Assembly: GCA_038496445.1 (NCBI GenBank)
Contig: JALMLS010000361.1
Span: 62,001-126,000 of the forward strand
DNA length: 64,000 bases
Direction of reading: 5' to 3'
DNA from: Trichosphaerium sp. ATCC 40318
Lineage: Eukaryota > Protista > Tubulinea
The translations under genes and the position numbers were made by a program. Positions 8,011 through 12,510 of this stretch are shown here, one piece after another. Each line of letters opens with the position of its first letter. The first letter of the stretch is position 1. Under the pieces are notes generated by a model that was not told the DNA's origin, ran no database searches, and worked only from the letters and a program-made list of their open reading frames with translations.

Positions 8011-11000
8011 TTAATACTTCTTGTATTCAAAAGTCCATTCTTTAGGAACAACAAGAGAAACATCACGTGATGGAGGGTATAATTTTGGTAAGTTTTTAAT
8101 AAGCTTATCCTGGTTTGATTTCTTTCTCTTCTTTCTTTTTGGAGAGGAGCTCATCTCTTCATCATCTGATGGTTCTATTTTGTTGTTAAGTATAAGAAAA
8201 AAACGAGAAAAAAAAAGGACTTGAGGAGTCAAGGGACCTTCGATGTTTTTGATTCGATGTTACGTACCTTTGACGTTATGTAGGTATTTCTTTCTTCCAA
8301 TATTGCTTTGTTTTTGTTCGTACCTCTGTGATAGATAAGACTTTAAAGTCAAGTTTGTATCAAGCATTGCATTTAAATCGAAACGAATTGGTCTTATATT
8401 TTTAGAACAATGTGCTGCTTTTATAATCTGTCGACCAATAGCACGTGCCAATGGAGGAGGAACTATTAGAATGTACAGTTAGTTTCTTGAAAAAAAGTAC
8501 ATTAAATAGTAAACAGACAATAAAACAAGTGAACTTTTAGTGCTCAAACTCTTTTTCACTGTCTTTCTGCTAGCAAAAAAAAATACTTGTGAATTTCCTT
8601 GTTACTGCTGTTTGTTCGTTCGTTACCTGCATTTCCTATTTGTTTTCTTATTGTTGTTTCATTTTTACCACAAAATAAATAATCATCAGGAAATCCTAAA
8701 ATAAGACGTCAGTTTGTTGAATCATTCATTCTTAGTCTTGTGTTTACCTTGTGCGCGAGCAAGTTCTCTATATGTAGAGCATCTGTATCCGAAATCAGAC
8801 TCAATGAACCTTGTTACGACATCGCCACCAGCACAAATAGTACCAAATACATCTTCATTTCTTAGAATAACACGTTCTTTCTTCTTAGCACTCAAATCTG
8901 TGTAAGGTGCTACGTGATGTGTAACTGTTTTAGCGGAAGGCTTGAAACACGTGTTAATCAAAATTGTTTTATGTATTTGCATGTACCGAACGCCATATCT
9001 TTTGGTAATACGAAGCTTTTTCGTAAGGTACTGTGTATGGTGCTTCTTTATGCTTGAATTTTTTAACACCTCTTTTATTGTTGTAGAGCTTTGGCAAGTC
9101 GCCTTTTGAAGAAATGGGAGTTAAATTCTCTTGTAGGTTTGGTATTAGGGTAGTGGTATCATACCTATTACATCGGATACTGTAGGGCAAGGTGATGTTT
9201 TCATTGTTAAAGGATCGCACTTAACAAGAACAGGCTCTCCCTGTAACAGAAAGGGCAAAGTTAGTCACTTTGTGGGGAGCACAGAGAAGAAGTATCAGCA
9301 ACAGCTCCGTACATCACACTCTCTCATATCTAATGGTATCATGGAGGGAGGTCTTATATAGAACTCATGTGTAGTTGGGGCAGGGAAACTAGGTAATTTC
9401 CATCCACGTTTTGCTCCAAAAATAAACACCCGAAACCTGCGGCATGTGAGCACACTTTTTTTAAAAATGCATTAGTACCGTCTTTGTGCTACTCCATAAT
9501 TACATGCCTTAGCTACATGAAAGCTAATTTGATAGTCAGCACGCATGAGTTGCTTTTGAAGTCCTTGTAGAATGTGTAAAGCGTTTGACCGAACTGTTTC
9601 TGATACATTCTCCAACAGAAAGTACTGAGGCTAAAAAAAAGCATGTGGTAAGGAATAGCAGTAGAATTCCGGTCTTTGTACCTGCACGTATTCAATAAAA
9701 TCAGCGTAAGTCTTTACCTCTTGATTACGTCCATCATCAAGCCTATCACGCTTTCTCTTCCTGTTTGCCTTCCTTTTGTTTGATTAGTATTCTCATTATT
9801 TTCTTATAACACGTACGAGAATCCTTGGCAAGGGGGTCCACCAGAAATAAGGTTTATATCTCCTGGGGAAGGAAGACAGTTCCTAAAACCATAAATATAC
9901 ATAAAACCAAATGAAGCCATTGATGTCAACCTCAAAAAAAAAGTTTGTTTTGAAGTTAATCAAGCCCACTTTTCCAGCATAACTAAAAATAATTCCTCAA
10001 ACGAATACCATAATATTGTACTATACAAAATCATAGTACAATAATATGGGTAAGGTTGACCTGGAGTATTGATTGGTATCAAAAGAAAAAACAAACTCGT
10101 CTTTTTTAAGCAACTTTGAGAACGCACTCTTCTTTTATCCTTGCAAGAATCTCAGATATTTGTCCACCGAGTTTATCATAATCTATCATCTTTGTTGATA
10201 AAGGAATCTGAATTACCTTTCCACTCTTTCTTTTGAGTACAACATCAATCCCATGCTAGTACAAAAAAAAATAAGTCACCGTTCCAAAAAAAAAGAAATT
10301 TCTGTGACTGCACCTTTGTCAAAACAACGTCCTGCACTGTGCTATTTGTATCATCGAAAGTATAGAGTAGTTTTCTTATGGCACGTGTATCTAAATCAAT
10401 TTCATCAAACCATTGATCTATGCCACCGTATCGACAGTAATACTGAGTAACCTAAAGGCATGGGTTAAAAATTAGCTATTGAAACAAAAATGTCTTTACT
10501 CTTAGCTCTGATTTTTCTTCCCTAAACAAACGTATACTCCATTCATAGATAGATGTCAGGGCGTTGTAATCTATTTTCTCTGCTTTATAATTGTTTTGAT
10601 TGATGTTGGCATCTCTCCTGTACAGCTAAAAAAGGCTTAAGGACTGTCTAGTGTCTCTTTGTATTTTTTTTTATTATACGTACACTGAGGTCCTTTTGTA
10701 GTTCTTGCTGTAGCTCTTTTGCAGTAATGTCACCATTAACAAGTTTTAAATACATTAAAAAATGTCCAACAGAAGCACAGTACACTGTTGTTTCAGGATG
10801 ATTTGTGCTATACGTCTCACAAGCATCCTAGAACCGATTTAATCTTAAGTTTGTTAAATAAGACGAACCTTATACAAGTCAACAGCCACAGGTATTTCGA
10901 TACCTGCTTGAATAAATCCTGTTCCTATTCCCCCAGCACCACAATACAATTCTAAAGCCTTCAAAGGACCATTCTTAAGTGCATAGTTTAGCAAAACCGA

Positions 11001-12066
11001 ACAGAACAAAAGATGAAAAAAGGTATGTAAACTTTGAACCCAATCTTTTCTTGAGGATTTCATACCAACTTCCATTTCTGCTTTTCAATGTCTACTAATG
11101 TGAAAATATTTCTGCCTTTCTTATATCTATAACAATACTTCGCTTCACTAATCATCATATTAATAAGCATAGGAGTGTTATATTTATGAACGCACATATC
11201 TTTTTCATCAAAATGTCTTACTGTTGTTGGTGATATAAGCTCACTCGCAAAACACCAATCAGTGTCATCTGACAAAAAGATCTAGGTAGCATGCGCGGTT
11301 AGCATCAAACTATTAAATAACAAAAAAGATGGGATCCGGTTTTACACGAGCAGTAGAAGCTTGCTTGAACAGAGGAAAAAAAATCGTACCTCTTTTTCGT
11401 CCCATCCTTCCATGGATGGTACAGCTAAGTGCCATAGATGAAATGCCCATTTAATATGGACAATGATAGTACCAAATTTATTCTTCTATAAAATCTTGTT
11501 ACAACACGTGATAACAAACTGACCTTGACAACCACACAGTTTAATAAAAAAAAGTTGGTTATTTGTAAAACAATTTTTTCAGTTGGTGTTTATCTGATTT
11601 TTCGCTTGCCAACTTATAAGGTAAACAGGTGATTTTGATTTGAAGAAGTTGAAAAACTGCACAGTTTTAGCAGATGTATTACCATTTGAAAAAAAAAACC
11701 ACTTTTTGATTGAATGAAAACAAAAAAAACCCACTAACGGCTATTTCTATTATCTGGCCAAGCCATGGTACATCATCTTTTTCTTGAGCGTCATAAGCAG
11801 CTCTTGGGAAATAAATAAGCAACTATTGTCTAGGAGACGAAAAAAAAGTGACATGTGGTTTAGTTGACATTTATTTTATTTTTGTCGTTTAACGTTACTG
11901 GCGTACCCATTTTCATACTCTCCTGGCTTTATATGAGCGTAACACCCTATTTTATAAATATTTCCGTTGATCTAAACCCAAAACAGTTAAAACTGCGCAG
12001 CTGTGTAAGATATACCTCGCAAGTCTCTAATTTGGGGCTGATATCGCTCGGCTCTAGTGTTGACAT
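8011..12066 (-). CDS. C5-cytosine DNA methyltransferase, DNMT1/chromomethylase-like (BAH + MTase with insertion)
   Basis: BAH-like N-terminus (INGNIYKIG..PWLGQIIEI..VHIKW..EIFLSDDTD). Motif I LELYCGAGG, NHPET, IV GGPPCQGFS, VI LLENV, VIII QRRFRVF, IX RELARAQGFPD, X QIGNAVPPPLA. Confidence 0.92.
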
Positions 12067-12510
12067 GTTGTGAACGAGTTTGTAAGGTAAAACGCCACTA
12101 ATAGCATGCGATTGTGCGTATGCTCGCTTTGTGCAGGTACGAAGGTGGCTTGTGGTAGTTTAACAGAAAAAACAATGAGAAGAGCTGTTGGTAGACAATA
12201 CTAGCGCCAGGTAGTTATTGATGACCGCTTTCAAGAGAATAGCGCGTTCAAGCCAAGTCAATAGTTTGTCAACTTGTTTATTGAACAGAAATAGCATTTC
12301 TATCATTGATTTACATTACATGCACGCAACTTATAAATGAAGCGGAATTGATATTAAACAAGCTTATGTCAGGACGCAATGTAATGCAGTCGCGTAAATC
12401 AAAGCTGAAGATCTTAAATCTCAACAGAGTCTGAGTTTCAAACGGTTAGAAAAAAAACAGCAAAGGAGTACATTGAGGACATTTTTTTTTCTTTTTTTCT
12501 ACGCTACAAT

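Follow-up and report, generated by a model that had tools for sequence, protein, structure and literature searches.

Can a chromomethylase (CMT) occur in a protist outside the plants? This question is raised by a gene of the amoeboid protist Trichosphaerium sp. ATCC 40318, located at 8011..12066 on the minus strand of a 64,000-nucleotide stretch of contig JALMLS010000361.1 (positions 62,001 to 126,000; the whole stretch is called the window below). A prediction made from the letters of the window had read the gene as a CMT-type DNA methyltransferase (DNMT) with a BAH domain at its N-terminus and a chromo-like segment inserted into its catalytic domain. Our analysis points to another answer. 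It is reasonably probable that this is an intact, intron-rich nuclear gene for a cytosine-5 DNA methyltransferase of 801 residues, which is of DNMT1 superfamily type and has diverged in this lineage. Membership of the CMT family does not follow, because all sequence tests of the insert were at noise level, exon 13 matched DNMT1 only among the methyltransferases in PDB, and the target-recognition domain (TRD) is about 170 residues long and lacks a block found in DNMT1.

Gene structure and affinity of the catalytic domain

The motifs I, IV, VI, VIII, IX and X of C5 DNA methyltransferases (PF00145) are all intact and in order. Pfam scans of single exons gave collinear PF00145 matches for exon 6 (motif I; positions 2-30 of the family model; E 0.014), exon 11 (motif IV; positions 59-76; E 0.0062), exon 13 (motifs VI-VIII; positions 103-153; E 2.4e-11) and exon 18 (motif X; positions 286-309; E 0.0074). 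The motifs LELYCGAGG, NHPETTVY, GGPPCQGFS (with Cys396), LLENV, GVAQRR, RELARAQGFPDDY and QIGNAVPPPLA were read in the translation. The strings named in the original prediction were also found there, namely NHPET (residues 208-212), LPSPGDINLISGGPPCQG (381-398) and VTQYYCRYGGIDQWFDEIDL (290-309). The conserved catalytic elements are kept (the PCQ cysteine, ENV, QRR, RE.AR.QGFPD and GNAVPP), and the gene has no sign of decay.

All coordinates given for the gene refer to the minus strand. Motifs I-II are encoded by exons 6-7 (10684..10973), where LELYCGAGG is followed by AVDLYKDACETYSTNHPETTVY and then by a helical stretch that leads into the insert. Motif IV, with the catalytic Cys396 in GGPPCQGFS, lies in exons 11-12 (9682..9882). 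Exons 13-14 (9313..9630) carry motifs VI-VIII (LLENV; GVAQRR) and an LPSFPAPTTH segment. Motifs IX-X (GFPDDYLFCG; QIGNAVPPPLA) and the C-terminal tail are encoded by exons 18-20 (8011..8695), and the tail holds a basic KRKKRKK run at residues 760-766.

The start codon is at 12066 and the stop codon ends at 8011, so that the limits originally predicted for the gene coincide exactly with those of a single intact gene. We built the gene model by sequence reading and fixed the exon ends by coordinates. A script working from these coordinates gave 20 exons separated by 19 introns, which measure 35-253 nt and are all GT-AG with consistent phases. The coding length of 2406 bases translates into 801 residues with a terminal stop and none internal. 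Exons 1-7 are located at 12066-12016, 11971-11907, 11802-11739, 11485-11390, 11281-11066, 10973-10869 and 10827-10684; exons 8-14 at 10625-10500, 10451-10314, 10255-10128, 9882-9817, 9772-9682, 9630-9479 and 9436-9313; and exons 15-20 at 9240-9165, 9129-8987, 8940-8748, 8695-8627, 8462-8268 and 8174-8011. The longest introns are intron 3 (253 nt) and intron 10 (245 nt). The G+C content is 37% in the exons and 33% in the introns, and the composition of the gene is the same as that of its surroundings. The joined protein was used for the frame check and for motif reading, and all family scans, homology searches and folds were done on single exons. Such testing costs much power, because most exons are only 21-72 residues long.

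Other exon models were tried and rejected. Splicing exon 7 straight to exon 11 breaks the frame, and alternative donors at 10217 and 8324 do not fit in phase. The frame of exon 1 is open upstream to 12159, and an open stretch that starts with ATG lies near 12300 (within 12067-12510); a missing 5' part may amount to at most one short extra exon. GTACG and GTATG are frequent among the intron donors, and introns of just 35-60 nt are numerous, a possible species-specific splice signature for gene modelling.

We then compared the catalytic exons with known enzymes. Exon 13 is the most conserved of them; in a phmmer search against PDB it matched 23 distinct DNMT1 sequences, and even at E<=10 no methyltransferase of another family appeared. 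Of 49 aligned residues, 21 were identical to DNMT1 (43%). Exons 5, 7, 8, 14 and 17 gave no match in the same database. Exon 13 was also scanned against viral and metagenome contigs, a collection that may leave out records of this same genome; phage or bacterial methylases were the only matches, and no complementary DNA (cDNA) or relative appeared. The best of these matches were 29-37% identical to exon 13, and these loci were picked up solely through one 8-residue word that they have in common with it.

A six-frame scan of the 70 Mb genome found only two PF00145 loci. The second is a canonical DNMT1-like gene on the minus strand of contig C7 (G000:C7:644018-650549; loci L001, L003, L026 and L030), in which two BAH matches precede the catalytic exons. 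The scan, which works exon by exon and gives a lower bound, revealed no DNMT2-like or DNMT3-like locus. In exon-wise tblastn comparisons, exon 11 (motif IV; 74% identity over 19 residues) and exon 14 (LPSFPAPTTH; 56% over 27 residues) were nearer to the contig C7 gene than to bacterial loci, whereas for exons 6 and 13 some phage or bacterial loci gave better scores than the contig C7 gene did. For exon 13 this comparison is biased, because the bacterial loci were chosen by the 8-residue word and the contig C7 counterpart is split by an intron. Taken as sequence evidence, these short and weak catalytic signals point to the DNMT1 superfamily rather than to CMTs or prokaryotic enzymes.

An alternative is that the gene encodes an "orphan" methyltransferase, whose catalytic domain came from a bacterium or a virus long ago and was later fused to a eukaryotic N-terminus, so that it is not a paralogue within the DNMT1 family. 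Orphan DNMTs are widespread in protists (PMC12344493), the short target-recognition region resembles that of many prokaryotic enzymes, and the scores of exons 6 and 13 just described agree with such an origin. Furthermore, a protein search of the whole library with exon 13 (51 residues) gave 0 matches at E<=0.001 among 1.84 billion representatives, and a word search with the exon 17 region was blank. However, a query of 51 residues reaches only relatives above roughly 55-60% identity, so the null result for exon 13 means that there is no close kin and no cDNA-derived protein covering this exon, and orphan status does not follow from it. The identity of exon 13 to DNMT1 is 43%, whereas to the phage and bacterial loci of the biased comparison it does not exceed 37%, and no bacterial methyltransferase was matched in PDB. 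The gene has 19 spliceosomal introns and a host-like composition, and its BAH-like N-terminus has an intron in common with the first BAH (BAH1) of the contig C7 gene. In addition, orphan DNMTs are usually without companion domains (PMC12344493). We regard an orphan origin as unlikely, and a recent transfer is ruled out by the composition, which is like that of the surroundings, and by the 19 host-type introns.

The insert between motifs II and IV

About 165 residues (216-380) separate NHPETTVY from LPSPGD, roughly 130-155 more than in ordinary enzymes. An insertion of more than 100 residues between NHPET and motif IV had been predicted; it is real and even larger, because about 186 residues span positions 30-59 of PF00145. 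The extra residues come from the last part of exon 7 together with exons 8-10. The latter three exons (10128..10625) contribute residues 248-378, among them YKAEKI (260-265) and VTQYYCRYGGIDQWFDEIDL. Each of them is open in the coding frame only, with 0 stops against 3-5 in the other frames, and all three would be open by chance with a probability of about 7e-4. A search of the genome for a second copy of the insert found none. The insert occupies the same loop as the chromodomain of plant CMTs, which lies "between the catalytic motifs I and IV" (PMC5410703).

Does this insert form a chromodomain? Pfam gave no Chromo match on exons 8-10. A six-frame scan of the whole genome with Chromo (PF00385) found 39 sites, many of them partial exons at 28-58 bits, and none was in the methylase gene. 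In phmmer searches against PDB, exon 9 matched no chromodomain and hit S100-A8 alone at E about 1, which we judged to be chance, and exon 8 matched nothing. We then built a local profile from 13 chromodomains of this genome. With hhalign, the probability for exon 9 against this profile was 0.8% and its score was 11.1, no better than the 10.7 of the control exon 10; the register chosen by the program was that of the original prediction (DQWFDEIDLD against NKWEEEGNLD). When 1236 stop-free pieces of the window were scored with the local chromodomain hidden Markov model (HMM), exon 9 ("VTQYYCRY...") obtained 1.5 bits and rank 25, that is, it was outscored by 24 unrelated pieces, and exon 8 ranked 81. 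The ESM Atlas features for exon 9 reached 0.82 at most and named unrelated families, which is noise. Where chromodomains have a nearly invariant Trp, in the KW strand, the insert has a Tyr, and its hairpin loop is too short by four residues. The chromo-like resemblance of the insert is at chance level in every sequence test that we ran.

The insert was also considered at the level of predicted structure. Exon 8 folded alone gave one long helix with a mean predicted local distance difference test (pLDDT) value of 87, and of 97 in mid-helix. This helix covers YKAEKI, which had been proposed as the first chromodomain strand and which lies about 25 residues ahead of the next strand. Exon 9 folded alone gave strand, strand and helix at pLDDT 57, which is the order expected in the C-terminal two thirds of a chromodomain. 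Foldseek with this low-confidence model returned no chromodomain and nothing meaningful. AlphaFold models of single exons made without an alignment are weak evidence either way. The chromodomain reading of the insert is not supported by these results, although the insert may have a cryptic chromo-like fold. It is probably a new module, in which a long helix (the end of exon 7 and exon 8) would be followed by the small strand-strand-helix unit of exon 9 and then by exon 10.

These tests bear on a second alternative, in which the enzyme is a true analogue of the chromomethylases. The insert would then be a degenerate chromodomain or another methyl-lysine reader, by convergence or by old homology, and the BAH region and the insert together would direct non-CG methylation to nucleosomes that carry the mark. 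The loop that contains the insert is the one in which CMTs, by definition, have their chromodomain (PMC5410703), and a BAH-like N-terminus without RFD is the layout of a CMT. The order of Y-x-A-E-K-I ... Y-Y-C-R-Y-G-G ... W-F-D-E-I-D-L and a following helix mimics that of a chromodomain, as do the hhalign register and the strands and helix predicted for exon 9 alone. However, none of the 39 Pfam Chromo sites of the genome lies in the gene, the hhalign probability is like that of the control exon, and the local HMM, phmmer and the ESM features gave no chromodomain signal. The replaced Trp, the short hairpin, the confident helix over YKAEKI (pLDDT 87-97) and the Foldseek result, the last obtained with a low-confidence model, also disagree with it. 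We consider this alternative quite improbable. The CMT-type architecture originally proposed for the gene holds for the BAH-like head, the C5-methyltransferase domain, the insertion in the CMT loop and the lack of RFD and CXXC, but not for the chromodomain, since exon-by-exon tests detected no Chromo (PF00385) domain between motifs I and IV.

N-terminus, target recognition and methylation context

A BAH-like region is encoded by exons 2-5 (11066..11971; residues about 18-164). Its pattern is visible by eye as YKIGCYAHIKP ... LGQIIEI ... VHIKWAFH ... EKE|IFLSDDTDW, judged against what we take to be the family consensus and against the BAH matches of the genome itself. No single exon gave a significant BAH (PF01426) match in Pfam, in PDB or in the BAH scan of the genome, because the region is cut into exons of 21, 21, 32 and 72 residues. 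The BAH pieces of this genome are too fragmentary for a useful profile, and a second copy of the BAH-like exon was not found in the genome. On the other hand, the phase-0 intron in ...DEKE/IFLSD has the same place and phase as that in ...DKKE/LFVSD in BAH1 of the contig C7 gene. Thus, the single BAH domain claimed for the N-terminus is likely by motif resemblance and by the common intron position, and it is statistically unproven at the level of exons.

The predicted lack of RFD, CXXC and a second BAH was borne out, and the gene has no room for such domains. The genome matches of PF12047 (DNMT1-RFD) lie away from the methylase gene. There are two weak ones of 23.7 bits each (G000:C28:224374-224541 and C340:31452-31619; loci L051 and L052); both carry one in-frame TAG and are away from both methylase genes. 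An RFD match was not found beside the contig C7 gene either.

The target-recognition region is short. It is encoded by exons 15-17 (8748..9240), and motif VIII is separated from motif IX (RELARAQ) by about 172 residues. Its exon 17 had no match in PDB by phmmer and none in the word search. A pairwise alignment with the corresponding exon of the contig C7 gene has a gap where the latter carries the segment GADWRWLP.... The contig C7 exon matches the TRD of DNMT1 at E 2e-17, including LIPWCLP.T..RHN.WAGL.GRL.W. In structures of DNMT1 with DNA, the block that is missing here helps to read the methylated parental strand. If the block has this function, the product of our gene is not a classical maintenance enzyme. 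None of the features that mark a maintenance-type DNMT1 was found in it, neither RFD nor a pair of BAH domains nor a long TRD containing the CLP...W..L..RL.W block.

The genome also contains at least three loci with an SRA domain, and the presence of such loci means that machinery for reading 5-methylcytosine (5mC) exists. SAD/SRA loci of the 5mC-binding type were recorded at G000:C547:1022-1815, C42:68012-68869, C91:167722-168543 and C615:2759-3580. Those on C91 and C615 score identically and may be duplicate copies or haplotigs. In the window (1-64000), the observed/expected ratio was 0.85 for CpG, 1.11 for TpG and 1.14 for CpA. CCG and CGG were at about 0.75 of the first-order expectation, and CAG and CTG were near 0.94. 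This mild, CpG-centred depletion is compatible with some methylation and proves nothing.

These data also concern the possibility that the enzyme no longer methylates DNA and is a regulatory, RNA-directed or decaying copy. The truncated target-recognition region and the large insert in the catalytic domain would agree with this, as would the mild CpG depletion of the window (observed/expected 0.85) and the lack of expression evidence in both the library search (exon 13) and the word search (exon 17). However, all catalytic motifs are intact and the 20 exons are in frame without a stop. The BAH-like and basic nuclear-type features point to chromatin, and the RNA-directed DNMT2 and DNMT6 are without companion domains (PMC12344493). 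We hold the loss of DNA methylation activity to be very unlikely.

It is more improbable still that part of the insert was created by the gene model, with one or more of exons 8-10 absent from the mature mRNA: no cDNA was found, introns 3 and 10 are longer than the rest and other splice choices exist, but exons 8-10 are open in the right frame only, with canonical sites and matching phases at the low joint chance given above, the join of exon 7 to exon 11 breaks the frame, and an intron of 800 nt would be far outside the 35-253 nt range of the gene.

Place among known enzymes and possible role

The protist enzyme resembles plant CMT3/ZMET2 in its N-terminal BAH-type region, in a C5-methyltransferase domain with a large insertion between motifs I/II and IV, in the absence of RFD and CXXC and in its size of about 800 residues. 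It differs from plant CMTs in that its insert has no detectable chromodomain signature and, at about 130-155 residues, exceeds the size of a chromodomain. Its target-recognition region is also shorter, exon 13 matches DNMT1 alone in PDB, and it comes from an organism other than a plant. One survey detected no CMTs beyond Viridiplantae (PMC5410703), and CMT-like genes of haptophytes have been discussed (PMC9998398, PMC12344493).

With DNMT1/MET1, including the contig C7 gene, the enzyme has in common the order of the motifs, the best PDB match of exon 13, the LP.FP.P.H segment after motif VIII, a BAH-type region ahead of the catalytic domain and the intron found in BAH1 of the contig C7 gene. 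In contrast to DNMT1/MET1, it has one BAH-like region instead of two, no RFD and a large insert between motifs II and IV, and its TRD lacks the block IPWCLP...HNxWAGLxGRLxW that is present in DNMT1 and in the contig C7 gene. No intron positions in the catalytic domain are common to the two methylase genes of this genome.

Fungal DIM-2 and other lineage-specific paralogues of DNMT1, compared here by description, are derived from DNMT1 and have kept BAH while losing the parts for replication coupling, and the protist enzyme would be like them in this. We know of no insert of this kind in DIM-2. By analogy with DIM-2, chromatin marks and not replication might guide the protist enzyme (PMC12344493). 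A narrow distribution and an unusual domain make-up are also found in orphan eukaryotic DNMTs and in diatom DNMT4. As noted above, orphan DNMTs usually lack companion domains, and in diatom DNMT4 the chromodomain is N-terminal and outside the catalytic domain (PMC9998398, PMC12344493). Protist DNMTs have acquired chromatin modules independently (PMC9998398, PMC12344493). With diatom DNMT4 and the haptophyte CMT-like genes on record, an unusual module in a protist DNMT is plausible and the theme is not unprecedented.

The best fit to these comparisons is a lineage-specific offshoot of the DNMT1 superfamily that is comparable in kind to CMT and DIM-2, and an orphan protist DNMT is less likely. 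Several points weigh against our interpretation. The affinity to DNMT1 comes from one exon of 50 residues at about 20 bits and from short matches, and the BAH-like region gave no significant match in any single exon. The hhalign register and the strand-strand-helix order of exon 9 described above are those expected of a chromodomain. No cDNA or relative was found, and the exon model was derived by sequence logic.

If the gene is such an offshoot, its mode of action may be outlined as follows. The single BAH-type module at the N-terminus would tie the enzyme to chromatin, and the basic run KRKKRKK near the C-terminus would direct it to the nucleus. The loss of the TRD block would make a chromatin-guided de novo or non-maintenance writer more likely than a copier of hemimethylated CpG. 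The new module in the insert could be a docking arm, a reader or a regulator. The enzyme would act alongside the DNMT1-like gene of contig C7 and the SRA-domain proteins of the genome.

A bolder possibility is that this amoeboid protist has independently built a chromomethylase-like enzyme, in which a BAH-type module is combined with a new histone or nucleosome reader in the CMT loop and the hemimethyl-CpG block is lost. This would mean chromatin-guided, possibly non-CG methylation outside the plants. We consider it unlikely. If the insert is merely a structural decoration, the gene would still be a useful new branch of the DNMT phylogeny, with no surprise in it; for the interest to be high, the joined insert would have to turn out as a reader of histones.

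DNMT1-derived readers of chromatin marks, namely plant CMTs and fungal DIM-2, are the textbook link between histone methylation and DNA methylation, and so far they come from few lineages. The BAH-like head, the new module in the CMT loop and the cut-down TRD would make this enzyme a third independent experiment of this kind, standing alongside a canonical DNMT1-like gene and SRA readers in one genome. It would also allow a direct test of whether the insertion loop of CMTs is a general docking point for chromatin readers.

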